This document shows positions 4,078 to 40,706 of a DNA stretch of 64,000 nt, in pieces. Made by a program: the position numbers and the translations under genes. Numbering within the stretch: position 1 is the first letter of the stretch; the number at the start of each line of letters is the position of its first letter. The stretch covers positions 186,001-250,000 of the forward strand of contig OZ316899.1 in NCBI GenBank assembly GCA_973895155.1, given 5' to 3'. The stretch is from Marsupella aquatica (taxonomy: Eukaryota > Plantae > Marchantiophyta). The notes beneath the pieces were generated by a model. The model saw nothing but the letters and a program-made list of their open reading frames with translations. It did no database searches and was not told the DNA's origin.

Positions 4078-6720
4078 ATGTCGCACACGATCCTCTCCAG
4101 CTCGGCCATTCGATTCTGGACGCAGTTCCTATCTACCGGAAGGCACTTGGCCGATTCATTGAAACACGCCAACCCGCGCCGATACGAAATCGAACGCGAA
4201 TACGAGAGAGCCATCCGCCTAGCAGGACGACACCACTACGTCCTTAACTTTGACTACCCGTCTCAGAGCGAGCTTTACCGACCAGCAGAGGTATCTGGGT
4301 ACTTCTTCAACGAAGACAAATATATCGGGTTCTGGGAAGCATTGCTTCGGCTTCCGGACGAGGTCTTCAATATCCCGGGTACAATCGACCTGCAGCGACA
4401 TCACTTCGACCACATCCCTGCCCGGGTTCGGGCTGTCATTAACGGCGAGTCCAATACCAACCGTTCGACAAGAGCGTCCGCACTCGCTTCGGAGAACTTC
4501 TACCAGCACCTGCAGAGCTTCATGGGAACTCGGCCATCAACCAACATGACCAACTCAGCCGGGCCCGTACCCGTACCCGTGCCCATGCAACCTCAGGCTC
4601 AGCTTCAGCTTCAGCCTCAGCCGCAGCCTAGCCAAACCCCACCACCTATCACCCAGCCAGCACAGGTACGCTCCGTCATCAACGCTGTGGATCTTAGCGA
4701 TGACGACGAGGCTACCCCACCCTTGACCAGGCGGCCCAGAGGAACAAGCGCTCGGGGGGCCGACACTATATCGTCCCCACCCCCTTCTCTGACCCCAGGA
4801 GCGGCCCCAGTAGACAACATGGTGACCGTGGCCGCCCCGGGCCCGTTACCAACCGCAGTGGCACTCCCCAGGCCCGATCGGGAGGATGGGGAAGTATCAC
4901 CTTCCCCGAGTCAGTCACCGGGAAAGAAGAGGAAGGAATCCGCCACTACATCCGGGTTACCGTTGGCCACGGTAGCCGTAGCCAAGGTGACGATGCACCG
5001 CATGGGGGAAAACGTTCACAGCAACATCCTCCATCCCAAGCATGCGGTGTACCTGAAGACTCAGGGATTTGAGCACCTCACCTCTCTCCCCTGGAACACT
5101 TGCAGGTACTACGGGGAGGACATGACAGAATTCGTCAAGAATTATGACGACGTACGTCAATAGACTCGGCTGCGGGGAAGGAATATGTCCCTCACAGAAG
5201 AACGGCTCAAGATGATCTTTGGGTTACCCGAAGGTGACCATCGAGTCGAATCACGGGCTCCCGGGGGCAAGGGGACCAAGTACCAATCTTCAAGTTTTCC
5301 CTCAGAGGGAGTAGTAGACAACGGGTTCGTGATGAGGACCTGCCTCATGCCCGAGATAGCTGAGCGGCTGGAGTTCCAAAGGTACGCTCTCCACATGATG
5401 GAACCCCGAGGGGAGATCTCCGCCACCCAGGTTATCCAGGTCGAGAACTATCGACCTAGGAAATGGGCGTCGTACTTCGCTAAGAAATTCCATGAAGAGA
5501 TGGAGCGGCGAAGGAAGACGTTGTACATTGGCGGGAAGGCGTATTTCGCTAGCCACATCGAAATCATTCTTGAGTGGTACGCTCGGTTTGATCGACGAAC
5601 CCTTCCCCGCATCAACGTTACAAAGCTGGTTCCAGCTAGGTGGGTTTTTCCGGCATTGGAGAGACGGCCCCAACCTGAGGCCCGAAGTCCAGTGGACACG
5701 CCAGCTTCACCCACCCCACCTCCACAAATAGCTGTAACCGTAACCGAGGAGGCGCCGGAGGGGTCGGTCGTTGCAACCGTTGATGCGACCCAACTAGCCG
5801 GGCTAAGTACAGAAGTTGGTATGGCAGAGGTCTTACCCGAACCCGGGTCTCCCAAGGACCCGCCGGTGGCAATTCTGGAGAACCGGACATCGCTGCAGGA
5901 GGACACTCCAGCCCCTTCCAACGTTATGTCCCCAGGGCTAGACGTCACTGCCCCGGCCCCTGCGCGTGTTGACGTCTGCCCGTGCCCAAATCCGGACAGG
6001 CACAACTTGGACCACCCGGAACTCTTCGTACAGGGTACGTTCCTGAACGGGCTTCTGGGAGATTTCTCTCATCAAATTGCCCGGGATACCGGGGAGTTCA
6101 TGGCCCGGAAGGTAGCCTGTTTCTTCAATCAGGAGTTGGTTGCCGCCGTAAAGGCAGGTCGGGCCGAGTCGGAGGCCCTTCAGAGGATAGAGCGGTACCG
6201 GGTGGAGTCCGTGTACCTAAAGAACAAAGTGGCGGCTCAAGAGGCTGAGCTTCTGGCACTACGACCCAAGGTTGCAGCCGCCGATGAGTTGTTAGCAAAG
6301 GCGTACGCTCTTACCGCCCTAGCCGAACAGGCCAAAGCTGGGAACGAGGCCAAGATTACACGACTCCGGAACCAGATTGACAGTTTGAAGAAACAAGCTG
6401 TCACCTGGCAGAAAGACCTGGAGGAGGTCGAGGAACGAGCCCAGCGGGACACGGCGGAGATAGCCACGCTGCAGGCCGAGATGGCGCGGCTCCAAACCGA
6501 GGCCGAGAAGCAGGACCAGCTGGCGGGTAAACTGACGAGCGACGCCCAGCAGCTGGAGGAGGCATGTCAGGAGGCAGTAGAGGAGACGGACGTGGCGAGG
6601 CGAGAGAACGAATCTCTGCTGGACCAGGTCCAGCTCCTCAAAGCGGACAATGACAGGCTTCGAAGGCAGCGGGATGGCCGTTCCCATTCGAGCGGCTCTG
6701 GCAAGCGTGCCAGGCATTAG
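4078..6720 (+). pseudogene. LTR-internal ORF (~880 aa): N-terminal domain, P/Q-rich linker, plant retroelement accessory domain (Transposase_32/PMD-like), C-terminal coiled coil; one premature stop
   Basis: ORFs 4078-5163 and 5185-6720 are in the same frame, separated only by TAG at 5161-5163, which reads CAT in the other copy. Core motif YLKTQGFEHLTSLPW...EFVKNYD...LRG..MSLTEERL..IFGLPEG...LEFQRYALH; the C-terminus is heptad-rich. Confidence 0.85.
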
Positions 6721-8055: not shown

Positions 8056-8161
8056 CTTACTTAGAATATCCAGAATCATCTCCACCATTACCTCCCCATG
8101 GCACACCTTACTTAGAATATCCAGAATCATCTCCACCATTACCTCCCCGTGGCACACCTTA
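8056..8161. repeat. 51-bp tandem duplication (x2)
   Basis: cttacttagaatatccagaatcatctccaccattacctcccc(a/g)tggcacac starts at 8056 and 8107. Confidence 0.9.
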
Positions 8162-8655: not shown

Positions 8656-11600
8656 AAACTGCGTTGAATTAAAGATCAACAACGAATTTCCAGGAGGTGA
8701 GTACACCATGTCGCGAATTGTAACCACTAGAACATAAATGTGAAGTACACGGCTTATATAATGAACAAGTCTGCATCACGACAGTGCTTGTAAACGTTTT
8801 TCACTAGCATTGCGCACCCTCATGGCTGCATGCCATTGCATTTATGCCCCGGCCCAGATGCACGCAGTCTGGTTGATCTAGTAATGCATTTACGCCCCGG
8901 CCCAGACTCCACTATAGCCAGCAGCCCATGTTCAACCATAACTACGACATCTGGTCAGCTTGGTTAAGCTTTATTCACTATGATCCAGACCTGTGGATTT
9001 TCTTTCCACACCGAGGCAAATTTAAGCAAGTGGACATTTCAATATCACCCACATCCCTAGCCAACCACGTTTTCTCTATTGCTTTCCTGAATGCATGGCC
9101 GAGAATAAAAGGAACATAGACGTCGCATGGTATCTAAACTTTAGTGTGCACGAGTTTTAGAGTGACGTTTTGGCTTACTGTCATATTCCAGATGGGATGT
9201 GCATTCAAGCTACTATAGTTTCAGAGTTGTTCTGCAATGGTATAACGCTATCATGTGGACAACTTTCTGGAAATTCTAAAGTATTGGAAGTTAGCATCCT
9301 TCTGGTTTTCAATGGTTTCTCCCCGTTGTGCCGATTGTTCAGTTGAAGCTGACAAAAATTTTATCCTCTCTCCCTGCGTAGCTAATTTTTGGGTGTTGTC
9401 GAGGAAGTGCTGCATCTGGAAAAGAAGTCTTGCGAATCTTGATTGACTACTTTAGTGTCTGCTACGACCCATTATCGATCCCATGGTCGGCGAAAGCCTG
9501 TCTGAAATCATGCGTAATTAATGAAGCCAATCAGATTGGCACTGAGCAATCGAATACTCCAATTTGGGCAGAGTTCGGCTTCGAGACTGTACCCAAACTA
9601 GCTTGCTGAGCCAGATGCTGAACTACTCCACGCCCAATCCAACTCGGCCCCGATGCCAATAGTACTACACATGCTATCGCATCATACCTAGCATGAAGTC
9701 TACACATCCTATCGCATCATACCTAGCATGAAGTCAGCTGATCAGATTGTACACTACACTGTTGGTCAGGGCTCAAATGCGAAAGCGTTATTCCTGCTAC
9801 TGGGGCCTACAGCAGCCTTAGCTCTCGCAGCAGATTAACAAAATATGCAGCAGCCGGGGCTGGGGCCAGAGTTGCAGGTCCAACCCCTCCAGTTGTTGAG
9901 GCGCCTACAGATCCTGGTTCATTGGGGTCATTCGGCCCATTACTCCCTTTGTTGCAAATCGACAGGCGCTTCGATATTTTGTTAATCATACCTCAGCGCC
10001 TACCCTTGCCCCATCGCCTCTATCTTAAAGCAAGATGAGCACCCGCATACGACTAATGTCTACCCAACACTCCCCCTTTCTATTTGGCCGCGCCAGCAGC
10101 CAGCCATGCATTTGTAGCAAGGTGCAAATTGGCATGACCAACACGACACAACAGTGTGAAGTATTTCGAGATCAAAATTCTTCTCGAATCTCCAATGTGT
10201 AAATGCGCACTCTATACGGGGCGAAATACTTCTCCTTCAATGTCTGTCTAGGTTGTTTCGAGCTGCTGCAGTTGTACTCTTCCCTATAAGCTGTGCTCTT
10301 GTCATTGGAAATGGAATGTGATTTAGTGAATGCCTTCTGCATATCAGGGCTAGGGATATCTACGATATTTTCTGTAGATGGCAATAGGAAAACATAGGAA
10401 ATGATGGTGGATATGTGCTCCTGTGTCGTAATTGTTTTTGTTTAGCTACAAAATAATGTTCTGGACCTAATTCCGACTTTCTATCCAGTTGACTTGGTTT
10501 ACAAGATGCTACTGGCTTGGTGGTGCATAAGGATCAACGCAATAAACTATCTTCTGCTACAGTTTAGTTCCTGGCCATATCATGATCGTTTATTAAGATT
10601 AATGGAGTCCCTTACCATGTGAGAAAATCAGTCGGTGCTTTCATCTCCACAAGATTTAGAGGTCTGTGTTTCTGAGGTGTTGTCAACACTGTACTGCCAT
10701 AGCAGCCCACTTATCATCCAAGGTTTCAGATTTCAAGCTGCCTGATTTTGGGGATTACTACTCATTGTGAATAAGAGCCTAGACATTTCAGATTAGGTCG
10801 ATCGTGGTCTGCAGAATGCGGTGAAAACTACTTCTCTCCTCGTCTATAACGTTTGTAATCTAAGTTGAATCATTATTACTGGAACTCGGTCACTAGCCAA
10901 TTTCAGAACAACCTTTCGTGGGCGACTTCTTGCAGTATTATTGCAGAGTCTCAATCTGCTCTTCATTGAAATTAAGATGTGGGTATGATTCTTGCCTCAG
11001 CTCCTTGAGAACAGATGATATTGCAGGCTTTGTGAGAAGTATTGTCTAGATTGAATGAATATCTACTACTCCCCTAATTAATTCGATTATACTAGAGGAG
11101 GTGCTGCATTCCGCAGAGAAGTGTTGATGAATACTGTTATTACTGCGCTTGAATAAATGCTTGCTCTCTCCAGTCCCAACGGCAAGGTTTATAATTATCA
11201 GATATTGTCGGCCTCGGTAAAGTCATTGACCTTCCCCCATTGTGAAGAGAAGATGAGTAAATTCTATCCCCACGCTAGCTATGTCCTTATGCTCCTCGCT
11301 CCTCCACTGCGCGCTTAGACTGCTACACGAGTCTTACAAAGCCCGGCCGATGCTGAACAGGGGAATATTTCCCATGCCATAAGGTCAGCTGCGCCACCAC
11401 GTTGATGTTAAAAATGTAATTATGTACACCGTTAAAGAAAGTGTCGATAAGGAACACCTCCCGGAGCCTCCTCCTCCGACTTCCAATCCCCGAATAAGCA
11501 CATGCCCTGCCCTGCCCTGCCCTGCCTAGGACTTCACTCTCGTGTCTCAATCGCAGTCATGAGTTCAGCATCATTGGTAATACCTACTGTGGTCCCCTGT

Positions 11601-14838: not shown

Positions 14839-15015
14839 GTGAGCACCTAAACATCAAATTTATCCCTTTTTGTACTCCTAAATCTTGAATGATTCATAAA
14901 TTTAATGATAAAAGTTACAACTTACGGCATTTCGGTACTCAGATCTTAAATGGTTCGTGTATATTTGACCGGAATTGTAATTTTTACTAAATAAATTATT
15001 GTTCTTACATGGCAG

Positions 15016-16380
15016 ATGGGAAAAAGAAAGCGTAATACTTTAAGAAAAAAAGAATTGGGGGAAGATTTTTCTGTGGATGTATTTGTTACAGTGTGGGAAG
15101 ACCTCAAAAAATTAGATACCATAAAATTGAAGTTTGCACTTCATTGGATTCTATGCCATGACAACATCCTTGAACTTTTTGTTAAAAAAGTTCTTAAACT
15201 AGAGTCTTCAAGATTTTCAAGAACACTATTCTTGAATGGGTATCAAAATTGTAGAAGCCATATCATTCAGATCTTTCCTCCTGAGGTGTTCATTGAAATT
15301 GATGACGTCTTTCTTCATCACAGTTTCAGACTAAAATTACCTCAACCTTTGAAAAAATCAATTACCATGTTTTCTAATCTTGACATTAGAAAGCTTAAAC
15401 TTTTTCAAAAAGAAAGAGATAATATTTATAGAAGTGGAGGAACTTATGCCAAAGTTGAAGTAGACGTTCAACGTATTTCCTCTTCAAAACTAAAAACACT
15501 TACGGGTGTAATTTTAGGCGATTGGGATCAAACTACAACAACATTTACCTCTGATCCAAACTTTATTTTCTCAAAATTTCCATCAGACCTCATTATCATA
15601 GAAGAAAAAAAAGGATTTACCTATCTTTTTGATAGGTCTGGAATCAACCCATATTTGATAGCAATGATATTCCATCAAGATATCCTATCACCTGATTCAA
15701 TGATCTTCATTCGAAGATTATTAGAACAATTATATGCTGCCCATCATGTTATCCAAAGAGGGAAAGGAAAAAGATCATGGGAAAGTAAGATGACAGGGTT
15801 TGGTCCTTTTCATAATCCTTACAAAAAAGATCAAAGTTGTGTATCTTTTTATACTCATGAACAAAAGATAAAGACATTCTTCAATCAAGATTGTCCTGAT
15901 GCAGCCAATTTTGAAGACATGGTAGATAAATATTTTCATCGAGAGTTAATCGATATTATACTTGGACTCTACATGTGGTTATGTCCACAAATGTTAGACA
16001 GTTTTTTAGATTATTCTCATCCTTACTTACGTTCAAATGATTATGAGATGAACATATTTGATAAAGCACTAAAATGTAAAGGTCCTAGTGCTTATCAATT
16101 ATATATTAGTAAAGATTATTGTGTAGAAACTCACGCTGATCATGATACAGCAGAATTTACTTTATGTTATGTTAGTCATCCTGATGCCAAAATTTCTCCT
16201 GGAAACTTTATTATTCCAGAGTATGGAATATTATTACCTATTAGAGATGGTAATTTATTTTCATTTCGTAGTGACATTGTCCATGGCACAGGATATAGAA
16301 TTCCAACATCAAATCCTATATACGTAGGAGCTGTTACCATAAACAAAAAATTAGATAGACTTTTACAAAGAAAACATTAA
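15016..16380 (+). CDS. 2OG-Fe(II) dioxygenase, TET/JBP-like (454 aa)
   Basis: C-terminal DSBH signature: KMTGFG; YQLYISKDYCVET-H373-A-D375-HD; GNFIIPEYGILLPIRDGNLFSF; IV-H423-GT. Intronless and visibly AT-rich relative to the flanks. The N-terminus carries a basic NLS-like stretch (KRKR...RKK). Confidence 0.75.
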   Translation: MGKRKRNTLRKKELGEDFSVDVFVTVWEDLKKLDTIKLKFALHWILCHDNILELFVKKVLKLESSRFSRTLFLNGYQNCRSHIIQIFPPEVFIEIDDVFLHHSFRLKLPQPLKKSITMFSNLDIRKLKLFQKERDNIYRSGGTYAKVEVDVQRISSSKLKTLTGVILGDWDQTTTTFTSDPNFIFSKFPSDLIIIEEKKGFTYLFDRSGINPYLIAMIFHQDILSPDSMIFIRRLLEQLYAAHHVIQRGKGKRSWESKMTGFGPFHNPYKKDQSCVSFYTHEQKIKTFFNQDCPDAANFEDMVDKYFHRELIDIILGLYMWLCPQMLDSFLDYSHPYLRSNDYEMNIFDKALKCKGPSAYQLYISKDYCVETHADHDTAEFTLCYVSHPDAKISPGNFIIPEYGILLPIRDGNLFSFRSDIVHGTGYRIPTSNPIYVGAVTINKKLDRLLQRKH

Positions 16381-16852: not shown

Positions 16853-16873
16853 TTAGGGATTTAGGGTTTAGGG
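16853..16873 (+). repeat. interstitial telomeric motif (TTTAGGG, about 3 units)
   Basis: ttagggatttagggtttaggg followed directly by T8. Confidence 0.8.
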
Positions 16874-17720
16874 TTTTTTTTCCTTCAAAAAAACCATAGA
16901 AACCCACGGGAAGGGGGGCCCAACAGGGCAACAAAAACCGAGGCAGCAAAATGCAAACCTGGTGAGACCAAGGGGTCCAAAGGTGCAAGGGCTCAAAAGG
17001 AGTGAACAAGGTAGGGAAAAGCACTAATCAAAGGAAAATCCTGTTAGCTATGACTGTTTCAACTAGAAAGCCATGCATGATCCGAACGAGTAATCCACCT
17101 AAGACGTTCCTTACTCACCAACTCTTTGACTCTCAATAATCTAGTATGTTTTCTACTGGGACCAGAGGCCTCACAGAGGCCATGCAAGGAATCCAACATT
17201 TCTGAAAGGAGGAGATTCAAGTTGAACCTTCTACTATTAGCACGATTAAAGCGCTGCTCGTTCCATGCTAGCCAAAGAGTCCAAAGCACATGGTAAACCA
17301 CAAAAACACGAATGGTGCCCTCGATTGGAGTGCAGCCAGTGACCTCCACGACAGAAAAAATGTTCAAGTACCGCCAAGAAATAACTCCAAGAAAAGTCCA
17401 CCAAGCTAGCTGCCAACACCTCTTAGCAAAGGGACAAGTGAAGAAAAGATGAGGAGAAAAACACCTCTAAAATATGGGCGCAAAGTAGACAGCTTCCATC
17501 TCCTTAATTTACCAATTCTGCTAGCTTGAACCCCAGTGAATAACCCTTGAGCTGCTATCCTCCAGAGAAAAATGGGGACTTTCAACGGTAAATCAGAAGA
17601 CCAGAGAGCATTCCAGAGTTTGTTCCACTCAAGGTCTAATAAAGAAATGCTCCAAATCCTATTAAGTCTTAGAGAATCAGAGCCTTTCGGTTGAATCACA
17701 GCCTTTCGGTCAAATCAAAG
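16874..17720 (-). mobile_element. 5'-truncated L1-clade LINE (zf-RVT C-terminus, 3' UTR, poly(A))
   Basis: Minus-strand WNKLWNALWSSDLPLKVPIFLWR (zf-RVT) and VLWTLWLAWNEQRFN, frameshifted between 17406-17699 and 17059-17367. A8 tail at 16874-16881. Confidence 0.8.
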
Positions 17721-19891: not shown

Positions 19892-22042
19892 TTACCTCTG
19901 CATTGGCCGAAGGGTTTCCAGTTCGAGGGCTTCATCAACCTCAATCGGATCCCAACGATCACTCTGCTCTCCAGACATTGTGGTCCAGTGGTTGATGCTG
20001 ATCTTTTTCAGGATCTCAACTCGTTGTTTGTTTATTGGGTCTTTCAAAGCCCCATCCAATAACTTGGTGGCTTTCTTTGCTTCATCTCTCAACTCTTGCA
20101 CTCGAAGTTCCCAAGCATCATAAGCATGTCGTGGTATCCGAACATCCTTAGAATTACATTGCACCAACTCTCGCTGGGCTATTTCACCCAACCACTTCTT
20201 TCTCTCCTTCTCTCTCTGCTTGGCACTTAATTCCAATGTTCGGATATACTCCACCCTCTCGAGGTTTTGCTGCTCCAACTTTTGTAATGCTTCAAAAGTC
20301 AGTGTGAGCTGCTGGGTAGTTTCTTTAAGCGACTTCTCTATCACTGTTATCATCTGAGAGGTATGACCTGCACATTGAGAGTGAGTATGGCATACTTTAG
20401 CAAATTCATCTTCTAATTGCAGCCGCTTCTCCTTTTCTTCTTCATATTGGCCTGAAGCCTCCTTGCTCGCTTTTTGGGCCTCCTTCAATTGTGCATTCAA
20501 CTCTCTGCCCTCTTCTTCAAAGGCAGCTACATACCGACTCAATTCTTCTGCCTTTGTGGTATTCTGAGTGTGTTGCTTCTCTGCTTCCTTCCGGACAGTT
20601 GTCACTTCCTCTATCAGCAAAGTAATCCTTGCCTCTTTTTCTTGGGACTTCATCTCCTGCTCATGCAACATTTGTTCTCGTATCTCCACCTTCTCATTGA
20701 GGAGTCTCACCATCTCCTTGTTTTCCTTCAGCAAACTCTCCAACTTCTCAATCCTCCCTTGGAGCTTAAGGTTGGTGTTGGCGCTTCTGAACATATCTTC
20801 TTCCTGCTGCTTTGCCTTTTCTCTCTCTCTTACCCCAGTTTCTACTTCGAGTGCACAAATGTGGGCCAACCCGTGCACTTCCTTGGCTTGTTGTAACCAC
20901 AAACGTTTGTCAGTTCCTACAGGGAAGGGTCGATTAATAAACTTCATCCTCTGCTCAAAGGAGGTGAGCTCAGACAAGACAACATTTGATAGCAACTCTG
21001 TCAACATTGGTTGATGGTATACATAATCAGATTGGGCAGTCGATGTCATAGCTTCTTCTTCCTCTTTGACCGGGATTATCACTCTCCTTTTCTTTCTTTT
21101 CAAGGACTTAACACATGCATTCCCCTTTATCCTCAATGTGCGTAATCCTTGTGCGCCTTCTTCATCAGAATTGTCCACTTCATCTTCACTGCTTGAGACC
21201 AGGCCCGAGACCAGGGATCCCTTTGGGGCATAGAGTCTCGGATTCTCTTCTTCCCCATCCTCGCTCTCCGACTCCTCCTTTTCTTCTTCCTCCTGATTTG
21301 CCTCCTCTCGCTCCTCTGAATCGCTGTCCTGCAAGGAGATTATTGTTACCCCGGTTGTGACCCTGTCGGCAGTGAGGGCGTGGTCCATCACTACGCTTAA
21401 TACATATGCACAAACTGACGGAAACAATGGTAGCCCCTTCCTGGTTATAACACTTGCAAGGTTGCGCTTCCATATCAACAATGGGTGAAGAGTTCCATCT
21501 AATACTCTCTTGGCAACTGATAGTTGCTCTGGCGTTACATAATGGTACCCACTCTTGAGGATTACCCACTTAGTAAAGAACTCCACATACTTGCGGACCT
21601 CTTGGTTTGTCATAACGCCATATTGGACCTTCTTCTCATGCTGGAGCTCTCCTCCTTGTTTTAGGAAGGCACTCATCTCTCTTCCCGTAAGTGCCTCAAT
21701 TGGATAGTCAGCTGGTAGGCTATCTGGGGCGGAAATCCCAAACAAAGTCGCTAATTCCTTGTTGGGGATGCGGTAGGCTTGTGCTCTGTATGTGATAAAC
21801 ACTCCAGTATCTGCAAAATTGACATCCACAATATCTTTGTAAAGCTGACAAGCACGATCAATTGATACAAACCTATCAATTCGGACAAGCCCATAGCATC
21901 GAGCCCTTTCAAATATCTCTCTGTATTCTTCAATGAAAGCCACCTCAGAGATTGAGTTCCTCAATCTTTCTTCTGGAGTTGATCGAGGTTGTTTATTTTT
22001 GGCTGGAGGGACCTCTACTCGGGTTTGATTTGGAGATGTCAT
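19892..22042 (-). CDS. retroelement accessory-type protein (Transposase_32/PMD-like domain + acidic linker + long coiled coil, 716 aa)
   Basis: N-terminal FIEEYREIFERARCYGL...ITYRAQAYRIPNKELATLFGI...YVEFFTKWV; E/S-rich linker; about 250 aa of heptads. A homologous fragment lies at 49217-49531. Confidence 0.7.
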   Translation of the reverse strand: MTSPNQTRVEVPPAKNKQPRSTPEERLRNSISEVAFIEEYREIFERARCYGLVRIDRFVSIDRACQLYKDIVDVNFADTGVFITYRAQAYRIPNKELATLFGISAPDSLPADYPIEALTGREMSAFLKQGGELQHEKKVQYGVMTNQEVRKYVEFFTKWVILKSGYHYVTPEQLSVAKRVLDGTLHPLLIWKRNLASVITRKGLPLFPSVCAYVLSVVMDHALTADRVTTGVTIISLQDSDSEEREEANQEEEEKEESESEDGEEENPRLYAPKGSLVSGLVSSSEDEVDNSDEEGAQGLRTLRIKGNACVKSLKRKKRRVIIPVKEEEEAMTSTAQSDYVYHQPMLTELLSNVVLSELTSFEQRMKFINRPFPVGTDKRLWLQQAKEVHGLAHICALEVETGVREREKAKQQEEDMFRSANTNLKLQGRIEKLESLLKENKEMVRLLNEKVEIREQMLHEQEMKSQEKEARITLLIEEVTTVRKEAEKQHTQNTTKAEELSRYVAAFEEEGRELNAQLKEAQKASKEASGQYEEEKEKRLQLEDEFAKVCHTHSQCAGHTSQMITVIEKSLKETTQQLTLTFEALQKLEQQNLERVEYIRTLELSAKQREKERKKWLGEIAQRELVQCNSKDVRIPRHAYDAWELRVQELRDEAKKATKLLDGALKDPINKQRVEILKKISINHWTTMSGEQSDRWDPIEVDEALELETLRPMQR

Positions 22043-25295: not shown

Positions 25296-28200
25296 TTAAT
25301 CCTTTAAATTTTTTGTTTGAAGGTTTCGCCACTTGTCTTTCAGATCAATCTGTGTCAAAGTCAATAAAACATGATAGATGAGCATGCAATTTGTCTTGTG
25401 TGCAAGGGTAAATACAGTAATACAAAAAGTAGGATATAACCATAGAAGACTTACTTCAGACCGGTCAATGAAGTGTGCACCCTCGGAAGCAAGAATTCGA
25501 CTCCACTTGCCTGGTCCAAACCTGAAATTAACCTTGGCTTAGAAAACCTCTTGTTCTTAGAGAAAAACACCAATTAATACCAGCTAGGTAAGATATTACG
25601 TCAATGCATTTTGATTGATAAGTCATAGGTTCTCTACTTGCCTGCGGACTGCCTGTTTGAGACAATTTGTTTCCTCTTTAGACCACCTTTTAGTTGCCCT
25701 ACGAACACGTATTAGACCATTGGGGCCTTCTTTCATGACTGCCCGGGTGATCAATTTGGAATTTTGTAATCCAATACAATCTTGATGCAGCCTCAACCTC
25801 TTAGATGACGGGCTGGACGTATCCTCCTTCCCTGTGCCCTGCAAAGACATCCAATTTGTAATACTCCAGCAAGGATTGCAAACATTACAAAATACAGTAC
25901 ATCTTCCATACTGTACAAGATAGATGTTGTTGTCACCAATGATTGAAAACAATGAAGTTTCCTGCAGACCACCTCACCTTGGCACTCGAAGTTGCTAGAT
26001 TGCCCTCCTCTGCTTTGTCTTTGGATTGGAACGGGGTGATTAGGGACCGAGAAGGAGGATTTAGCAAATCTATAATTCGTTTTCTCCCTAAGTTCTTCCC
26101 CATATCACAAATGCCTTTGTAATTCTCACTCTGTGGGGCTGGAAGCTCAACTAATCTCTGTTCTTCCGGATGAATTAGGTGTTGGACTTCATTTGACGAT
26201 TGTTGCATTTTGCTAGTAGTAATTCCTCTGTTGAGCATATTAACCTCTGTGCTCACTTCTATCACAAAAAAAACACCACATTGGAGACTTCAATTCTCCA
26301 TCAACAGCACATACAAAGACCTAGGAGTCTGAAACTACTCTATACACTATCAATCTGAACTAATCAATGCTAGTTCTAGTGCAATTTTGGTCAAACTGTA
26401 AGACTACATATGAGTTGAACTATGACATTGGTGGGCACTACATACCATACACTGGTTGGAAGGATGCCTGCTTTGGCAACAATACAGGCGCCATGATCTG
26501 CTGGTTGGCCACCTCCAAAGGAGCTCCTTCATTCTCATCTATCAAATTCTCTTTACCTGTTCCAATCTCCACCCGCCTTGTTCTATAGTGATCCAATTTA
26601 GACTGCAAATACAACCATCCAATTAACGGAAATGATATTTCTCCACCACAATATGTATATTCACAATGACTTGCAGCAAACAACAAATCAGTCCCACCTT
26701 TTACCAAATCTGATAGCTAGTGAGAGAAGACAAGGCCCAAACATTGTTAAAACAATGCATCTGTCTCCTAGCCTGTGAGTGCGGGACAAAACCAATGGAA
26801 AAATCCCAAACTTTTTTTGCACCACTCCATCGAGCGGTGCAAATTAAACCAACTATTTAATAAGACATTTAAGGAAACAATCCTTTGGAGGAGGAGGGGA
26901 AGGGAGAGAATCATGAGCTAAGTTACCCAAGGTTGATCCAAATCAATACCTGAAGCTCAACTCGGACTTCCTCGGCAACACTTTCATACTTGTCTTTCAA
27001 AGTATCCACATCCCTACGAACTGCGGCCAAGGTGGTCACCATCATTTCATTCCTCTGTAGGAGTAGCTCCAACTTGACACCTATTGTGTTGTTTGCCTCT
27101 ACTTGCATCCTCAAGTTGGTCAGTATTGTTTCGTTCCTCTCTGTCTGTAACTCCAAGGTGGTTGTCATCTTCTCATTCCAGTCTTTCTGGCGCTCTTTCT
27201 CTATTTTCAACTCACCTACAACCTCCATCAAGCACAGGCATGATGTACAACAAGATCTGACTGTTTTTGAAGCTTCTGAAATGCTCAAGGGGAATACATT
27301 CTTTAGTGTGAATATGTCGGAGTGCTCCGGCAACTCCGTACCATTTGTTGTCAACTCGATACCAAATTTTGTCTTCAATTTTTCCTGTTCTCTATCCTCT
27401 GTTCCAGGCGTTGCTTCCGCTTCGCCCAATGTCTTCCTTGACATTTCATGTTCTTTACCCCCCGACAGAGGTTCTGTCTCTTGAAGACTCAATGTCTTCA
27501 TGGACATTGCATGATCTTCATGGATTATCCCAACCTTTGTCACCATCTCATTTTCACAAGCTCGATTGAACAAAGAACCATCTTGGTGTTCGTTCACAAA
27601 AGAACCATCTTGCTGACCTTGCGGCTTTGCTCCACTGGTTGAGAATAGCCCGAGAAGTCCTCCACTACTACATGGATCACCCTCATGCACACTAGAAACA
27701 ACAGTTCCTTTGGCATGTCCTGACATTGCATCATCGTCGTTCACAATTTGCAGATGCATTGTGAGATGTTTTTGTTCTGTGCAGTTCTCCTCCATCTCGT
27801 GGTTTTCCACTCCATGATGCTCCACACCCACTTGAGTAGATGTTTTCCAATGGAATACTTGTGGTCTTGGCAAAGACACAATTGAAGGGGACTTCTCACT
27901 CAACAGAATTTGCAGATGGGATCCAAAATTGTAAGTGCAAGTCATGTTACCTTCGGAGATTTGTTTCCGGGCTCTGCAAAGGAGGTCGATCAGTCTCCCG
28001 CCAAGATATTCTCCCCAATTCTTCCTACTACTTGTTTCTTCAACTTGCTTTATCTGGCACAAAGACACATCGGCCCTGCTCCCCTTAAAGTGAAGAGCCC
28101 CCAATTGAAACTCTAGCCTCTCTCTGATTAGGGAATCTTTGCAATATTGCAATGAGTAAGAACCATTGCTGTTCCTTTTAATCCCTGCAAATGACCTTGG

Positions 28201-28512
28201 ATTATATCGAACTGCTTTTTGCTCAAATGGCTCCCCTGACCCTTGCAACTTGAATGTCTTCTTGATAGAATCCAAACTCAAGTCTATTCTTCCCCCACAA
28301 ACCCATGTTTCAGATTGTTCACTGTCAAAGTTCCGGATGAAATCTATCATGTCAGACTTAGAATGACTCTTAGTGTCCCAACGAACTCCCAAAACACAGT
28401 CTGCAAGCCCATTGTGCTGAAGATATTCTGAATGTCGCGCTTGACACAATGTTGTCACCACAAGTGGTGGGATAAAATAGAATGTTGGCATCGCCATAGG
28501 CTTGGAAGACAT
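25296..28512 (-). CDS. spliced fusion gene: retroelement accessory domain + coiled coil + C-terminal TRF-like (telobox) Myb domain, ~772 aa; exons complement(26950-28512, 26446-26602, 25978-26258, 25642-25838, 25455-25521, 25296-25349)
   Basis: All five introns have consensus ends (gtattg, gtatgt, gtgagg, gcaagt [GC donor], gtaagt; AG acceptors) and the phases (0,1,0,2,0) join without stops. The last three exons give KRWSKEETNCLKQAVRRFGPGKWSRILASEGAHFIDRSEIDLKDKWRNL. Exon 1 has YLQHNGL...W...DFIRNFD...GGRIDLSLDSIKKTF...ERLEFQLGALH...FGSHLQILL, homologous to the LTR ORFs. The 5' start is uncertain. Confidence 0.85.
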
Positions 28513-28680: not shown

Positions 28681-29130
28681 AGTGTCAATAACACCAAGTA
28701 ATTAACATTCATCACCAAGAATGCTAAAATGCATTTGAGTCCGGATATTCGGGTGCTATGGTGATTGGCGCGAATGAAATCCGCCACTTCCCCGGGAAAA
28801 TTCACAATGTCTATGCACACATGAACCCACTGTCCCTACTTGTCAACCTTGGGTTCAACTAGAAAGAATTGTAGGGAACTAGATCCAGAGGCACATAGAC
28901 ATGTACAGTAATAAATCTGGTGTACAGTGTCAATAACACCAAGTAATTAACATCCATTGCTCAAAATGCTAAAATGCATTTGAGTCTAGATATCCGGTTA
29001 CTATGGTGATAGGCACAAATGAAATCCACCACTTCGAGGAAGATCCACAAAGTCTATGCACGCAGGAACCCATGTACTGTCCCTACCCATCAACCTTGGT
29101 TCAACTAGAAACAATTGTAGGGGAACCAGA
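28681..29130. repeat. ~246-bp diverged tandem duplication upstream of the fusion gene
   Basis: agtgtcaataacaccaagtaattaacat...ggttcaactagaaa begins at 28681 and 28927. Confidence 0.85.
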
Positions 29131-30294: not shown

Positions 30295-30728
30295 AAATAT
30301 TGAGGCGAGACCAAGGAAAGAACTATACACTCCTTGGGACAAATCAATAGTAGATTTATGAAGGTGAGTACCTTAACATCAAAATTCCCCCTTTCTTCCC
30401 ACCTAGTACATGTTGAAATATTCATAAATCTAATGATAAAAATTACAACTTACGGCATTTCGGTACTCAGATCTGAAATGGTTCGTGTACTATTTGACCG
30501 GAATTGTAATTTTTACTGAATTGGAATTAAAATCTTGAAAAAAATTCTGTGGATTTGTTTGCTACAGTGTGGGAAGATCTAAAAAAATTGACACCATAAA
30601 ATTGAAGTTTACACTTTATTGGATTCTTTATTATGAAATATTCTTGAACTTTTTGTTAGAAAAGTTCTTAAACTAAAGTCCTCAAGGTTTTGAAGGACAC
30701 TATTTTTGAATGGCTATCAAAGATGTCA
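30295..30728 (+). pseudogene. degenerate partial duplicate of the 5' part of the TET/JBP-like locus (small exon, intron, N-terminal coding region)
   Basis: Colinear with ~14775-15250 (e.g. ttacaacttacggcatttcggtactcagatct; cagtgtgggaaga; accataaaattgaagttt). It has indels and stops and lacks the catalytic domain. Confidence 0.88.
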
Positions 30729-30780
30729 CCTTTTGGACGTGGTTACAATTATCCCTATTTTCATTGCTCCCTGTGTGAAT

Positions 30781-32976: not shown

Positions 32977-35900
32977 TTATTTTTCTACTTCTAACTACTC
33001 CGTTTTAATTCCTACATTACTTACCTAGTTCTAACCTAACAAAAATTGTGGGCCCCTCCCACTACCCCCTATTGCGGGACCGTTTTGCCGAGCTCTCATA
33101 GCCAGACGCACATCGTGCCCGTTCCTTGTAACGGTCACGATCCCTTTGCAAGATTGCCACCTGCTCCTCCAATTCCGTAACGCTTGCTCGTGCAGTCTCT
33201 ACTTCGGCTGCAGTTTCCAAGAACTCATCCCTCAGCTGCGTGGCCTTGTACTCCATCTGGAGAATTTGTGCCACGTGGCCATCTTTCGCCTCGGCTAACT
33301 CAGCTGTAGCTGAGGCTTCCTTAGCCGCAGATTCGGCTAACTGCTCCTTCAGACGAACAACCTCTGCTCCGCTTCCCTCTTCCATAGCCATAGTCGTGCG
33401 CTTGTTAGCTGCATCTAACTGACGCTTAAGTTGAGCAATTTCTTGTTGCTGGAATATTATTTTCCCATCCCTAGATGACTTCTCTAGCTCGTAGACTTTG
33501 AACGCCGCCTGCCCTATTGCTAACTCCTTCTTGTCTTTGATGGTGTTGTTGCGGCATTCGACCAGCTCTTCCTCTCGAGTAGTCAGCTCTACTCTCAATT
33601 CTTTGAACTGTTCCTGGAGTTGTCCCAAACTCTTCTTTGTGAACTCCAGCTCCGCATTCCTAGCCGTTACGATGGAGGTTGAGGTTTCCAGTCGTTCTTT
33701 AAGGGTTGCCACCTCCGCCACATTGTGTGCCGCAAGAGAGGACTCTGTTGCTAAGTCTTGCTTGGCCTTAGCCAACTCCCTCTCCGTTATGACTAGTCGT
33801 GCCACCTTAGCCGCAACCTCATTTGACACCACCTTAGCCGTAGCTAGTTCCACCTTGGCCGCCGTTAATTCCTCTCTCAACGCAACCACTTCCCTCTCTA
33901 GCTGGATTCGTGCCTCCACTACATCGTTGGCCCTTATCACTTCCTGCTCCCTTAGTGCCCTATCTCGATCCAGCTCCTCGAGGATACAATGTTTCATTAG
34001 TTGGACGGCTGTGAGTCCCAACTTGTATGAAACATCTAAATGGAACGCATGAAGTCTGTTGTCCAAAGTATCCTGGCCCACAGCCTGGAAATTTCTAGGA
34101 CGTGGTTTCGTCTCCCTCTCAATTGTTGAGCTAAGCTGAGCCAGCGCATCCGCAGCTGTCCCCTGCGATGGTGCAGCCTCTTCTGGTTCAGTAGGGTATC
34201 CCGAGGGCCCATCCTCTCTCCCTTCGTCGCTCGCCAAAAAACCGGGTTCTATAGCAGTGGCTACGACATCATCGATCGCGTTTGATGGTACTACCGTATC
34301 CGCGGAATTCGCCGTTGCCGCAATTGTTTCCACTTCATCCTTCTCCAGCCCTTCTGTGGTCGGTGGCGACCCTTCTCCTTCTTGGCCATCCTCCTCCTCG
34401 TCACCCATTCGAAGTCTTTGTTGGCGCTTGTTGACCAGCCTTGGTCTTGCAACCTTAGCCGTTGCTGCCTTCTTAGCTGTAGAAGACTTGTCATGGATCT
34501 CGACGCCCTTTGCCGTAACATCCTTGGCCTTATCCGTGGCAGCCTTCCACGTAACTACGGCTACCGTTCCCTTGGTCGCTTCCTGGCTTGTGCCGGGCTC
34601 TTTTACCCGTGTACTTGCGGGTCCAATTGTAAACGCTTGACCCCTTCTCTCCGTGAACTCTGCTGCTTTGGGATATTTCCAATGGAAGGTGGCGAGGTAG
34701 TCGTGCCTGAGTTTTGGAAGGCATAGTGACCATCCTCGTGAATACCATTCAAGAATAATCTCAATGTGACTGGCTGCATAAAATTGACCCCCAATGCTTA
34801 AAGCTCTGCGCCCACTGTCCAGCGTCATATGTAGCTTACGGGTAAAGTGGGTGGCCCAACTTCGTGGCCTGGTATCCTCCGTCTGTAACACTTGGGCCAC
34901 CGAAATCTCCATTCGTATCTCCACCATATGGAGTGCATAGCGTTGGAACACGATTTGTTCCCGAGTTTGATCGTTGATACACTTTCTCAAAGTGTATCCG
35001 TTGGCACATCGGGCATCAGAATTGAAACCCGTTGGCTTGTATTCCTCGGTCTCCTGGGTGGTCAGCCTTAGTTCCACCTTGTCTTTGCCTTCGGGCAAGC
35101 CAAAGATGCATGTAAGCCTGTCCTGACTTAGGGACATGACCCTCTCTTGGATCATCGTGCACTCGTCCTCTGCCCTAAAATTCTCCAGGAAATGATAAAT
35201 CAAATCGTTGGTGAAGCGATTTGTACACCACGGTAAGGAGACAAAATGCTCAAACCCCTGGGCCTTAATATACTCTTGATTGGCCTCCATGAGCATATCC
35301 CTTTGCGCTGCCTGGTCCATGCGGACAGGGACAAGACTTACATCTGGGGATGCTTCCCTAGACGGCGGGGTCTGGGCCTTCCTCTTCTCCTTACCCTTAC
35401 CCTTATTACCCGCAGTCCTAGCCATTTCCTCTCCTTCCGGTGTTCGCTGCTCCGCCGTTGCTAGGGCTGTGGGTGGTATTCTCCTCGCTCTGCGTTTCAA
35501 CTTTGGACTCGATTGTGCTGAGCCGGAGCCGCTTGCTGTTTGCTCGGTGTTGCACACCTGTCGCATTGCTGTGGACACTTGCTCGATCGGGGCTGGCTGG
35601 CCGTGCTGAGGCCTGATGCTTGTCTCCGCGCCCCCTCCTCCGAGCTTTCTTAGCGATGGCAATGTAGAGCTTGATGGTCCCGCTGCTACGATTGGTTTAG
35701 AGTGCAAGAGCACAATTGTAGTGGCTGCCAATGACTCATCCACTTTGTCAAGGTCTATCACTGGTCTTAGAAGCTTAGCGCTCTCCCTCGCTATCTCCTC
35801 CCGTTCCTTCACTTGCTCCGGTGCAAAGTATGTTGTAGCTCGTGCATGCAACTTGTCGAGGTGGGCTCGATTCAGTCTTCCTGACCCCAGAAGACTAAAG

Positions 35901-36481
35901 CACCATTCTGGAAGTCGCACTAGAGCTTCATTTATCGACAAGAACTTCTCGGACTTGTCGAAGAAGAGTTTGCTCACCACCCCTTCGCCTACTACTTGTG
36001 GATCCACCTGCAAGGGTTGATTGATACAACAGTGGCCGCTAATCTCAGATAGTAGTTCTACCCCTAACCTCTTTTCATACTCATACTTCTTTGGTTGTAG
36101 CTTTTTGAGTGAGTCTGCTAACTGTGACGCCGCCGGTATGGCGGTTAATGAGTGATTCGGTCTAACTGCACTCGGCACGCGCGTTAGGAGTGTCTTAGAC
36201 TGCTATTATTAGCATAACAACAGTATTTAGGTAATCATTATGGGTAGGATATCATTAGGCAATAAGGGGGAATTCAGGTTCGGACTGGCGGCTGGTCGCT
36301 ATTCGCACACCCGGGTTACGAGCGTGGAGGGGCCCCTCCCTCGGGTCCGTATAACAAACTTAAGGAAGCGGCCACTGACACGCGCTGACTCAGACCGGCG
36401 GAGTGGCCGGCACACCACAAGCATGAACGGTTCAGCCTATGGGCGTCGAGGAGACGTCGGGGGATCGACAAGCGCTCAAGG

Positions 36482-36489
36482 TATAAAAG
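36482..36489 (+). promoter_or_regulatory. TATA box of the solo LTR-A
   Basis: TATAAAAG about 100 bp upstream of the ATG at 36590. Confidence 0.6.
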
Positions 36490-36589
36490 GGGAGCCAACC
36501 CTTTGTAGTGCACCAGTCCATCAGTCCACGCGCCAGCTTCGACCCCAGCTCTCTCGTTCGCTCTAAGTCGCCACTACTATCTCCTCTGA

Positions 36590-39220
36590 ATGTCGCACAC
36601 GATCCTCTCCAGCTCGGCCATTCGATTCTGGACGCAGTTCCTATTTACCGGGAGGCACTTGGCCGACTCATTGAAACACGCCAACCCACGCCGATACGAA
36701 ATCGAACGCGAGTACGAGCGAGCCATCCGCCTAGCAGGATGACACCACTACATCCTTAACTTTGACTACCCATCTGAGAGCAAGCTTTACCGACCAGTAG
36801 AGGTATCCGGGTACTTCTTCAACGGAGACAAATATATCGGGTTCTGGGAAGCATTGCTTCGGCTTCCGGACGAGGTCTTCAATATCCCGGGTACGATCAA
36901 CTTGCAGCGACATCACTTCGACCACATCCCTGCTCAGGTTCGGGCTATCATCAACAGCGAGTCCAACACTACCCGTTCGACAAGGTCGTCTGCCCTCGCT
37001 TCGGAGAACTTCTACCAGCACCTACAGAGCTTCATAGGAGCTCGGCCAACAACCAACATGACCAACTCAGTTGTACCCATACCCGTACCCGTACAACCTC
37101 AGTCTCAGCTTCAGCCTCAGCCGCAGCCTAGCCAAACCCCACCACCGATCGCCCAGCCAGCACAAGTGCGCTCCGTCATCAACGCTGTGGATCTTAGCAA
37201 TGACGACGAGGCTACCCTACCCTTGACCAGGCGGCCAAGAGGAACAAGCGCTCAGGGGGCCGATACTATATCGTCCCCACCCCCTGCTCTGACCCCAGGA
37301 GTGGCCCCGACAGACAACATGGTGACCGTGGCCGACCCGGGCCCGTTACTAACGGCAGTAGCACTACCCAGGCCCGATCGGGAGGATGGGGAGGTGTCAC
37401 CTTCCCCAAGCCAGTCACGGGGGAAGAAGAGGAAGGAATCCGCCACTGCATCCGGGTTACCATTGGCCACGGTAGCCGTGGCCAAGGTGACGATGCACCG
37501 CATGGGGGAAAACGTTCACAAAAACATCCTCCATCCCAAGCATGCGGTGTACCTGAAGACTCAGGGATTCGAGCACCTCGCCTCCCTCCCCTGGAACACT
37601 TGCAGGTACTACGGGGAGGACATGATGGAGTTCGTCAAGAATTATGACGACGCGCGTCAACATACTCGACTACGGGGAAGGAGTATGTCCCTCACGGAAG
37701 AACGGCTCAGGATGATCTTCGGGTTACCCGAAGGTGACCATCGAGTCGAATCACGGGCTCCCGGGGGCAAGGGAGCCAAGTACCAATCTTCAAGTTTTCC
37801 CTCAGAGGGAGCAGTGGACAACGGGTTCGTGATGAAAACCTGCCTCATCCCCGAGATAGCTGAGCGACTGGAGTTCCAGAGGTACGGCCTCCACATGATG
37901 GAACCCCGGGGGGAGATCTCCGCCGCCCAGGTTATCCAGGTCGAGAACTATCGACCTAGGAGGTGGGCGTCGTACTTCGCTAAGAAATTCCATGAAGAGA
38001 TGGAGCGGCGAAGGAAGACGATGTACATTGGCGGGAAGGCGTATTTCGCTAGCCACATCGAGATCATTCTTGAGTGGTACGCCCGGTTTGATCGACGAAC
38101 CCTTCCCCGTGTCAACGTTACAAAGCTGGTCCCAGCTAGGTGGGTTTTCCCGGCCTTGGAGAGACGGCCCCAGCCCGAGGCCCGAAGTCCAGCGGACATG
38201 CCAGCTTCACCCACCCCACCTCCACAAGTAGCTGTAGTTGTAACCGAGGAGGTACCGGATGGGTCGAGTGTCGCAACCGTTGATGCGACCCAACAGGCCG
38301 GGCTAAGTACAGAAGTCGGTACGGCGGAGGTCTTACCCGAGCCCGGTTCTCCCAAAGACCCACCGGTGGCTATTCCGGAGAACCGGACATTGCTACAGGA
38401 GGACGCTCCAGCCCCTTCCAACATTACGTCCCCAAGGCTGGACGTCACTGCCCCGGCCCCCGCGCGTGTGGACGTCTGCCCGTGCCCAACTCCGGACAGG
38501 CACAACCTGGACCACCCGGAACTCTTCGTACCGGGTACATTTCTGAACGGGCTTCTGGGAGATTTCTCTCATCAAATTGCCCGGGATACCGGGGAGTTCA
38601 TGGCCCGGAAGGTAGCCTGTTTCTTCAATCAGGAGTTGGTTGCCGCAGTAAAGGCAGGTCGGGCCCAGTCAGAGGCCCTTCAGAGGATAGAGCGGTACCG
38701 GGTGGAGTCCATGTACCTAAAGAACGAAGTTGCGGCTCAAGAGGCTGAGCTTCGGCAACTACGACCCAAGGTTGCAGCCGCCGATGAGTTCTTAGCAAAG
38801 GCGCACGCTCTTACCGCCCTAGCCGAACAGGCCAAAGGTGGGAACAAAGCCGAGATTACACGACTCCGGAACCAGATTGACAGTTTGAAGAATCAAACTG
38901 TCACCTGGCAGAAAGACCTGGAGGAGGCCGAGGAACGGGCCCAGCGAGACACGGCGGAGATAGCCACGCTGCAGGCCGAGGTGGCACGGCTCCAAACCGA
39001 GGCCGAGAAGCAGGACCAGCTGGCGGGTAAACTGACAAGTGACGCCCAGCAGTTGGAGGAGGCTTGTCAGGAGGCAGCAGAGGAGACGGATGCGGCGAGG
39101 CGAGAGAATGAATCTCTACTGGACCAGGTCCAGCTCCTCAAGGCGGACAATGACAGGCTTCGAAGGCAGCGGGATGGCCGCTCCCATTCAGGTGGCTCTG
39201 GCAAGCGTGCCAGGCATTAG
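36590..39220 (+). pseudogene. LTR-internal ORF, second copy (~876 aa); one premature stop
   Basis: In frame from ATG 36590 to TAG 39220 except TGA at 36740-36742, which is CGA in copy 1. It is open across the position where copy 1 has its stop. Confidence 0.87.
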
Positions 39221-40706
39221 CGGCAGAGTAGGAATAGAGTAGGATTAGGACTAGCTTAGTCAGGCTCTTGGGACAGGCACCTGCCTTAGGTACAGCTTCG
39301 CTGCCGTGCTGTCCAGCCTGCATAGATTAGGATCTTCTAATAAGACACAGCCGTTTCCGGCCTGACTGTCAGCTTAGTTAGGACCGTAGTCAGTGAATCT
39401 TCGGCGAGAGGACACCCCGTCCCTCGGCCCTTAGTATTTAGTGCACCCCTCGGTAGAGTCGAGGGGGGGGGGGGTTTTAGTTGCAAAGTTGGGCGTCCGC
39501 GGTATGTGCGGGGAGTCCCGACCTCTGGGAATGAAAGAGTACCAAGGGGAGGGGGTAGGACTAAGCTCGTCGGGCGAGTGCGGAGCCGGGCTCCGTTGTA
39601 GTGTGCACCCTCGGCCTTGAACCTGTTCATTCCGGGGCTGTCGGGTCAACTAAGTGTACGCATATGTTCCCTTTGTAGTAAAATCCTTTCCCATCATTTT
39701 CCTTCGTGTAAATCGAGATTGTATGCATGTGCGCGTGTTGGTTTCTCGTATATGGGTGGCAGCGCCAGGCCGAACGCACTACCCGAGACGTGCACAGGGT
39801 GCAGCCTGCGGGTAAGTGGTTGCGAGCACGGGTTGAGGACCTGTATCATCGAATCCGGATCGAAGGCGGACAGCACGAAGGCTTAGAAGTCCTTAAGCCG
39901 GGGTCGATCCTGCTATCGACTAAGGTACGTTCCGGCGGCGGAACACAAACCATACCTAGGAGGTGTCCGTATTTAGCAGTATGCGCACTTAGCGCTAGTT
40001 TACGAGAATAAGGTGCATTACGTGCTTCCCTTCCTGCCCGAACCCTCAGATTTACGAGGGATGTGCCCGTCTAAGCTGAAGTCTGAGTTAAGGCCGCAGT
40101 CGATGACGTGACACTAACGTTACTCCTATCTGGACAAATTTGATCCAGAAAGCATACGCCGTCCCTTCATTCAGCATCTGGTTATTGGAGAACTTACGGG
40201 TAAGGAATGACTGCGATTTCTTATCCATAATCTAGCTGCAATTGCTCTCTGTACTCCTGATTCTCTCGAGAAACTTTGTGCGTCTATCGATTGGAGCTAC
40301 TCGTAGCTAGGGCGAGCGAAGGTCGATCGAACCAGCAAAGCAAGGGAATTGCGAGTGTGAATAATGAAGGTTTGGGGTGGCCTTGCTTGCCTTACCCTCT
40401 CCGCTGTGGTTGAAGTCCCTCGTGCTAGTGCCGCCGCCGGTCCCAACCATGAGAATCTGCATCGATTTCACGTTCTTGGCGTATGACTTATCCGCGTACG
40501 GCGTACTTACTCCCGGGAACATAGTGACGGCCATCACTAATAACCGAAGGGAACCTTCATCTTTAACGGCTGTCAGTCTACTCTTCTTCTAACTACTCTA
40601 GTCCCCGTCATTACGTGCGTACTTCACTCTTTCTACGTACCTTCTACCTAATTACCCCGTCTAAACTCCGTATCTTGCGTATACCCTATTCTTTAGCCGC
40701 GTCACA

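Follow-up and report, generated by a model that had tools for sequence, protein, structure and literature searches.

A predicted liverwort gene family combining a PMD/VANC-fold domain, a long helix and a telobox Myb

Do a transposon-type open reading frame (ORF) and a set of telomere-repeat-type Myb exons, lying side by side on the minus strand of a stretch of liverwort DNA, belong to one and the same gene? The question is raised by positions 28512-25296 of a 64,000-nucleotide (nt) stretch of the Marsupella aquatica genome (contig OZ316899.1, positions 186,001 to 250,000; hereafter the window), for which an earlier reading of the letters alone (the sequence-only reading) had proposed that five introns, one of them of the GC-AG type, link a large transposable element (TE)-like exon to a telobox Myb, forming a new chimeric gene that the ORF list breaks into pieces. 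The gene is, in our estimation, probably an intact member of a multi-copy family whose products carry a PMD/VANC-fold domain, a long helix and, joined on by splicing, a telobox Myb; judging from the comparison of its relatives, this family is old and not a new chimera. In the plain ORF listing of the window, the gene is indeed visible as separate pieces only. Joining the six exons at the proposed junctions [Table 1], with removal of all five introns including the GC-AG one, yields a 2319-nt frame devoid of internal stops, i.e. 772 codons followed by a TAA at 25298-25296. Of the five donors, four read GT, and that of intron 4 reads GC (CAG/GCAAGT); AG is found at all five acceptors, each time after a pyrimidine-rich tract, and the phases of introns 1 to 5 are, in order, 0, 1, 0, 2 and 0. 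The donor of exon 1 (CAG/GTATTG, phase 0) is located at the end of the long helix, and the start codon at 28512 aligns with the N-termini of homologues. Since no RNA run was found, splicing of exon 1 to exon 2 in vivo is a step that we infer.

The 59-residue product of spliced exons 4 to 6 scored 41.8 bits against the Pfam family Myb_DNA-binding (PF00249; gathering cut-off, 24.4), whereas exon 4 alone scored 14.8 bits, below threshold; the Myb domain is thus present only if both Myb introns, one of which is GC-AG, are removed. When solved structures were searched by sequence, the 14 best matches were all telomere-repeat Myb domains, namely those of zebrafish Terfa, human TRF2 and human TRF1, and plant TRP1 and TBP1 and yeast Tbf1 appeared lower in the ranking, among c-Myb and other Myb domains. 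The third Myb helix, IDLKDKWRNL, fits the telobox motif (VxxKDxxR type) and the stop codon falls 8 residues past WRNL (12 past WR), in agreement with the telobox-type Myb without extension that had been described from the sequence. A Myb extension of ~30 residues after the telobox defines Group I of the TRFL proteins (TBP1, TRP1 and TRFL1/2/4/9) (PMC4700174). The window protein is devoid of it and displays instead the C-terminal, extension-free telobox Myb typical of TRFL Group II. Nor does it have the N-terminal Myb and central GH1 domain of TRB/SMH proteins, its Myb being C-terminal and exons 1-3 yielding no linker-histone match.

The same pairing of domains is found elsewhere. The N-terminal globular part of exon 1 is referred to here as domain X. 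Among 1.84 billion representative proteins, searched exhaustively with HMMER, only 62 relatives turned up; their sources are Calypogeia fissa, a leafy liverwort (NCBI), and Logan or metagenome contigs without annotation. A word-index protein search with exon 1 retrieved no relatives, coiled-coil words having probably filled its candidate list. The closest relative of domain X (P0001) is 47% identical, and the closest one from C. fissa (P0023, in locus L001) is 49% identical over 91 residues. The order domain X-helix-Myb, on one strand, recurs in four other loci (L001, L002/L003, L004 and L005). In L001, a coiled-coil ORF and, beyond it, three Myb exons come after P0023 on the same strand, and both introns between these exons lie at positions matching those of the window gene. 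Equivalents of exon 4, with an intron at the same place and in the same phase, and of exon 5 are present in L001, L002, L004 and L005, and an equivalent of exon 6 in L001, L004 and L005. In all family models the phases of the two Myb introns are 2 and 0, and a phase-0 intron directly follows the long helix in the window gene, L002 and L004; that of L004, the first of a model with one GC donor, is 81 nt long and in frame. GC-AG introns occur in two family members at different positions, the first Myb intron in the window (25641-25522) and the intron after the linker exon in L004 (2386-2483).

We defined the family by a domain X ORF followed by three same-strand Myb exons (phases 2 and 0) and by membership of the Myb-linked clade; the window gene, L001, L002/3, L004 and L005 all fall within it, and the contig of a further locus (L006, P0014) is too short for its Myb exons to be judged. 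A maximum-likelihood tree built from 33 domain-X sequences placed the Myb-linked loci in one clade (support 94/90, or 94/69 with P0010 of L005 included) and the domain-X copies borne by long terminal repeats (LTRs) in another (99/98). Myb exons were found in five of the five readable loci of the Myb-linked clade. Four other loci thus agree with the window gene in order, in strand and in the phases of the Myb introns, and three of them are open when spliced, which upholds the proposal that the Myb goes with the TE-type part. The label of a new chimeric gene, on the other hand, has to be given up, since the pairing is old: copies that are only 29-49% identical have it in common, among them at least one of another liverwort genus and one of an organism with 60% GC. 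A larger element common to the window and the C. fissa locus was also considered, and was dismissed because the likeness of the two is confined to domain X and the Myb exons and does not reach into the flanks.

What kind of domain the Myb is joined to was addressed by structure prediction. AlphaFold2, run on residues 1-215 with a 26-homologue alignment, yielded a model of high quality (predicted local distance difference test, pLDDT, 93.3; predicted template modelling score, pTM, 0.89). The only solved structure matching it was that of VANC21 in complex with target DNA (Foldseek probability 0.99), with a Z-score of 9.4 over 199 residues; in a comparison with 48,161 solved chains, VANC21 reached a Z-score of 9.2 versus 2.2 for the runner-up, the alignments covering 199-201 residues overall. 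Clusters of predicted structures (Atlas) matched domain X with template modelling (TM) scores of 0.61-0.71 and comprised PMD (0.65), DUF1985 (0.67), Transposase_32 (0.61) and ATHILA (0.63) clusters, as well as one linked to Peptidase_C48. A feature search with domain X agreed, pointing to PMD-superfamily clusters. In sequence searches, exon 1 had no Pfam match, PMD (PF10536) included, at E-values up to 0.1, none of the 26 aligned family members matched Pfam PMD at E-values up to 1, and one aligned domain-X relative weakly matched Transposase_32. On the strength of the predicted model, domain X belongs to the PMD/VANC fold group and lies outside the Pfam PMD family. The relation to PMD proteins put forward in the sequence-only reading consequently holds at the level of the fold (VANC21 Z-scores of 9.2-9.4; Atlas TM scores of 0.61-0.71) and fails at that of the Pfam PMD family, to which no match was found.

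In a model of the whole exon 1 product, pLDDT values below 50 over residues 210-371 and 384-406 indicate a disordered linker, and an unbroken helix spans residues 411-520 (pLDDT 86-96), its end coinciding with the exon 1 donor. The GLLGLFS motif of the linker is common to an LTR-borne paralogue (GLLGxFS), and the LTR-borne paralogues match coiled-coil Pfam families at the position corresponding to the helix. Prediction of self-association with two copies of residues 418-521 returned a score of 0.15 against a mark of 0.32, which speaks neither for nor against binding. VANC and MAIN have a common fold, and VANC and Athila proteins have been predicted to oligomerize through coiled coils (PMC13547354).

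Four other copies of domain X are present in the window [Table 1]; all are without a Myb, and a relaxed search of the window for other Myb exons found none. As the sequence-only reading had noted, exon 1 is TE-like and homologous to LTR ORFs of the same window: residues 18-204 of domain X are 27-29% identical to ORFs 5014-5571 and 37526-38071 (E about 4e-18). Both of these ORFs sit in a 4-kb repeat, the two copies of which (3612-7618 and 36123-40115) are 93.25% identical. The repeat is a true LTR because it has TG...CA ends, because its solo copy is flanked by the 5-bp target duplication CTAAC, and because an integrase and a purine-rich tract precede the other copy, which directly follows the reverse transcriptase/RNase H/integrase ORFs. 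The gene at 25296-28512 is not located in an LTR of this kind; the repeat comparison of the window revealed neither a long direct repeat flanking it nor terminal repeats at its ends. In addition, the nearest relatives of exon 1 are Myb-linked genes, one of which stands beside a gene of the telomere-linked-helicase type, and not the LTR copies. The description of exon 1 as a domesticated retroelement domain is therefore not supported: retroelement origin and host domestication are no more than possible, transfer may have run in any direction among host, LTR element and helicase element, and the gene may now serve either the host or a mobile element.

Table 1. Features of the window gene, its domain-X paralogues in the window and the open spliced models from other loci.
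Feature	Position	Strand	Description
Exon 1	28512-26950	minus	
Domain X (exon 1 residues 1-209)	27886..28512	minus	Globular PMD/VANC-fold, predicted structure
Disordered linker (exon 1 residues 210-410)	27283..27885	minus	Predicted disorder; carries GLLGLFS motif
Helix (exon 1 residues 411-521)	26950..27282	minus	One continuous ~110-residue helix, presumed coiled-coil stalk
Intron 1	26949-26603	minus	GT-AG, phase 0
Exon 2	26602-26446	minus	Linker; open in frame within 89-codon ORF; no Pfam match
Exon 3	26258-25978	minus	Linker; open in frame within 110-codon ORF; no Pfam match
Exon 4	25838-25642	minus	Basic stretch resembling a nuclear localization signal, and Myb helix 1; followed by GC-AG intron (phase 2)
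Exon 5	25521-25455	minus	Myb helix 2; required for 41.8-bit Pfam Myb score
Exon 6	25349-25296	minus	Myb recognition helix with telobox motif IDLKDKWRNL; stop TAA 25298-25296
LTR-borne domain-X paralogue	4849..5700	plus	In 3' LTR (3612-7618) of Ty3/gypsy element; in-frame stop 5161-5163
LTR-borne domain-X paralogue	37499..38194	plus	In solo LTR (36123-40115), target duplication CTAAC
Third domain-X paralogue	35323-34637	minus	Inside 1038-codon ORF 33062-36178; same clade as LTR-borne copies
Distant domain-X paralogue	44769-45326	plus	Head to head with helicase gene 41045-43720
Locus L002/L003			Metagenome and Logan contigs, 60% GC; open spliced model of 488+ residues (contig ends first); phases 0, 1, 2, 0
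Locus L004			Logan contig, 52% GC; open spliced model of 531+ residues; phases 0, 1, 2, 0
Locus L005			Logan contig, 49% GC; open spliced model of 545 residues; phases 1, 2, 0

The repeated sequences of the window include other protein families. Within the 4-kb solo LTR at 36123-40115 lies an ORF of 788 codons that encodes domain X and a coiled coil; the insertion site of this LTR is the 5' end of ORF 33062-36178, in which a paralogous domain X is found as well. A fragment at 30407-30741 is 73-92% identical at the DNA level to the 5' region and first codons of a TET/JBP-like gene (14879-15252, 15016-16380), so that the TET/JBP-like gene family, too, is locally repeated. Finally, a 716-codon ORF on the minus strand (19892-22042) without Pfam match has a 143-residue stretch in common with 49220-49639 on the plus strand (36% identity, E 2e-20), the pair representing another unnamed repeated protein family.

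The helicase-type neighbour mentioned above raises the possibility that the Myb-linked gene is not a host gene at all and rather an accessory targeting subunit of a selfish subtelomeric element, travelling with a telomere-linked-helicase-type (recombinase-helicase) gene. Under this hypothesis, which we deem unlikely, the Myb would home the element or its products to telomere repeats, the VANC-like domain would block silencing, and the window copy would be a remnant left behind. The Myb-linked gene of L002/L003 indeed stands head to head, at a distance of ~1 kb, with a gene for a 1490-residue DEAD/Helicase_C protein (in L002: helicase, 143-4615, minus strand; domain-X gene, 5617-7440, plus strand). 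This protein is 33% identical (E 2e-128) to the helicase at 41060-43720 of the window (gene 41045-43720, minus strand), which is itself head to head with the gene of the distant domain-X paralogue (43828-45785, plus strand), the two head-to-head domain-X genes belonging to different clades. The pairing of a telomere-linked-helicase-type gene with a domain-X gene may thus represent a conserved two-gene unit. A multi-copy element would also fit the sequencing depth over exon 1, which exceeded that of the flanks several-fold in three of the four runs holding the locus (all genomic, from two related organisms); in organism B, depth was raised over the Myb exons as well and not over the introns, which points to close paralogues. 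The state of the C. fissa copy, which is degraded and whose Myb-exon part is tandemly duplicated (7143-8367 and 9639-10863, 94% identity, 2.5 kb apart), is likewise in keeping with a selfish element. Speaking against such an element, no helicase or recombinase adjoins the window gene, L001, L004 or L005, and no helicase is found at L006; the neighbour of L005 resembles an ordinary F-box/kelch host gene; the window gene is not bounded by terminal repeats; and the paralogues, at 29-49% identity, are old and not near-identical as in a young transposon family. A wider version of the same idea, which we regard as quite improbable, is that an unrecognized class of subtelomeric mobile elements in bryophytes and related green lineages has domain X-helix-Myb proteins as its subunit for homing and anti-silencing. 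Such elements would, with the same slight probability, be built around a recombinase-helicase of the telomere-linked-helicase type, the Myb steering them to TTTAGGG and the VANC-like domain locally undoing silencing; the TET/JBP-like dioxygenases scattered in the region would possibly be partners in the latter process. Returning to the reading that we favour, that of an intact member of an old family, the window copy has neither recognizable transposon borders nor a helicase partner, and in our reading it belongs to a subtelomeric family as a resident copy that has lost its mobility.

Several observations weigh against an intact spliced gene and bear on two further explanations. At the 5' end of intron 1, the frame of exon 1 runs into a stop of its own (26925-26923), 8 codons beyond the donor, such that exon 1 could stand alone in the manner of its LTR-borne paralogues. 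The NCBI annotation of C. fissa splits L001 into three separate genes, the last of which encodes a 79-residue Myb protein, and this copy is degraded, stops interrupting both domain X and the equivalent of exon 4; the latter stop is in frame and lies in the first of the two Myb duplicates (7143-8367). Among the 20 longest of the 62 domain-X relatives, none had a Myb on the same polypeptide according to Pfam, although nearly all of these are unspliced ORF calls, making this weak evidence. None of the four runs holding the locus is recorded as RNA, and their contigs are genomic, include the introns and have no splice joints. The exon substitutions listed between strains are 14 non-synonymous versus 6 synonymous, with no clear purifying selection; these figures derive from the best-supported 40 of 131 listed differences, 20 of which are exon substitutions, and some of the contigs may be paralogues. 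As to function, Arabidopsis TRFL proteins without Myb extension show no in vitro binding to telomeric DNA (PMC4700174).

The first of the two explanations is that exons 1 and 2 are never joined and that the locus consists of two separate, co-travelling units, one for a TE-type protein of 529 residues (28512-26923), the other for a small Myb protein with its start in exon 2 or 3. Besides the stop shortly after the donor and the separate genes annotated in C. fissa, the ATG codons of exons 2 and 3 and the fact that the LTR-borne paralogues, all Myb-less, stop directly after the coiled coil fit this scheme. Yet the window, L002 and L004 all retain a phase-0 donor placed directly after the helix; four loci have an open frame across the junction, even the 81-nt intron of L004 being in frame; the linker exons have no conserved start codon; and order and strand linkage have persisted down to 29-49% identity. 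We consider two units improbable. The second explanation, in our view a doubtful one, is that of a silent relic, i.e. a recently inactivated or never expressed copy residing in transposon-rich subtelomeric heterochromatin, the frame of which is open only through youth. The lack of an RNA run among the four, the 14 out of 20 listed exon differences that alter the protein, surroundings made up mostly of LTRs and repeated gene fragments, and the broken C. fissa relative would all be expected of a relic. Less so are 772 intact codons with all ten splice signals in place and the open frames of three other family members. The distribution of insertions and deletions among strains argues in the same direction: the only ones listed in exons, of 12 nt and 3 nt, preserve the frame and map to the linker region of exon 1, whereas those listed in the introns and 3' flank measure 1 nt or 13 nt, none a multiple of 3, the 1-nt ones being in intron 1. 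Related strains also differ upstream of the gene, where a tandem repeat of ~245 bp (28681-29035) directly precedes the start codon and occurs in a rearranged form with a joint 28900>28681 and 25 extra letters.

If the spliced protein is made as modelled, its ~110-residue helix would render it oligomeric, and the several Myb domains of each oligomer could bind tandem or clustered TTTAGGG-type repeats by avidity, an arrangement that may offset the absence of a Myb extension, as in dimeric TRF1/TRF2. Possible targets exist in the window itself, where (TTTAGGG)2 with at most one mismatch was found 7 times versus 0.05 expected and the telobox motif AAACCCTAA 16 times versus 0.65 expected. These telomere-like sites are mostly located between 46 and 56 kb (46351-46364 and 53166-56116), with one at 16860-16876, and many of the telomere-type repeats sit in satellite units of 215-255 bp at 53-55 kb. 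The PMD/VANC-like domain would in this manner be held at telomere-like repeats, where it might act on DNA or chromatin. PMD-C proteins (MAIL1/MAIN, MAIL2) act at DNA motifs that are often found beside teloboxes and oppose silencing by Polycomb (Polycomb repressive complex 2, PRC2) (bioRxiv 10.1101/2024.09.27.615353). By analogy with them and with VANC21, the most likely effect of the tethered domain X would be to counter silencing.

How, then, does the predicted protein compare with known systems? VANC proteins have the same fold as domain X and are sequence-specific anti-silencers of transposons. VANC21, the anti-silencing factor of the Arabidopsis VANDAL21 Mutator-like element (PDB 9LNJ/9LNK), is the sole solved match and covers ~200 residues, nearly the whole of domain X. 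The solved entry is a complex with target DNA; the likeness of domain X to it is structural, and DNA binding by domain X is suggested by analogy. VANC has moreover been predicted to oligomerize by a coiled coil (PMC13547354), as is presumed of the helix of the domain-X protein. The two differ in that VANC21 is only 13-14% identical to domain X in sequence, has no Myb, and comes from a dicot DNA transposon, whereas the window gene has no adjoining transposase. The LTR-borne Ty3/gypsy ORFs have a homologous domain X and the GLLGxFS motif and are laid out alike, the domain being followed by a spacer and a C-terminal coiled coil; unlike the window gene, they are found within 4-kb LTRs, have ~200 further residues of proline-rich sequence at the N-terminus, end after the coiled coil and form a separate clade.

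In Arabidopsis, MAIN/MAIL1/MAIL2 and TRB meet at the same promoters and push Polycomb silencing in opposite directions. MAIN, MAIL1, MAIL2, DUF1985, Transposase_32 and ATHILA are TE-associated or TE-related chromatin proteins whose predicted structures resemble domain X (TM scores of 0.61-0.71); the PMD families differ from it in that Pfam PMD is matched neither by the window protein nor by its 25 aligned relatives. In that plant, the PMD module and the telobox reader (TRB) come as two distinct proteins, whereas the window gene places such parts on one predicted chain. With TRFL Group II (Arabidopsis TRFL3, 5, 6, 7, 8 and 10), a comparison restricted to the Myb, the window protein has in common a single C-terminal telobox Myb without extension (PMC4700174), and differs by its 110-residue helix and PMD/VANC-fold N-terminus. 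Each kind of domain is thus already known and, as our literature search found no paper describing a PMD- or VANC-type domain and a telobox Myb on one chain, their combination is undescribed in the literature found. A natural, conserved fusion would provide a one-chain test of a PMD/VANC-type module tethered to a known DNA motif and would bear on the handling of subtelomeric chromatin in early-diverging land plants. Through it, a family of TE accessory proteins would be tied to repeats of the telomere type and, in one organism or more, to a gene of the telomere-linked-helicase type; it would also stand beside TRB, TRFL Group I and TRFL Group II as a fourth architecture among plant telobox proteins.

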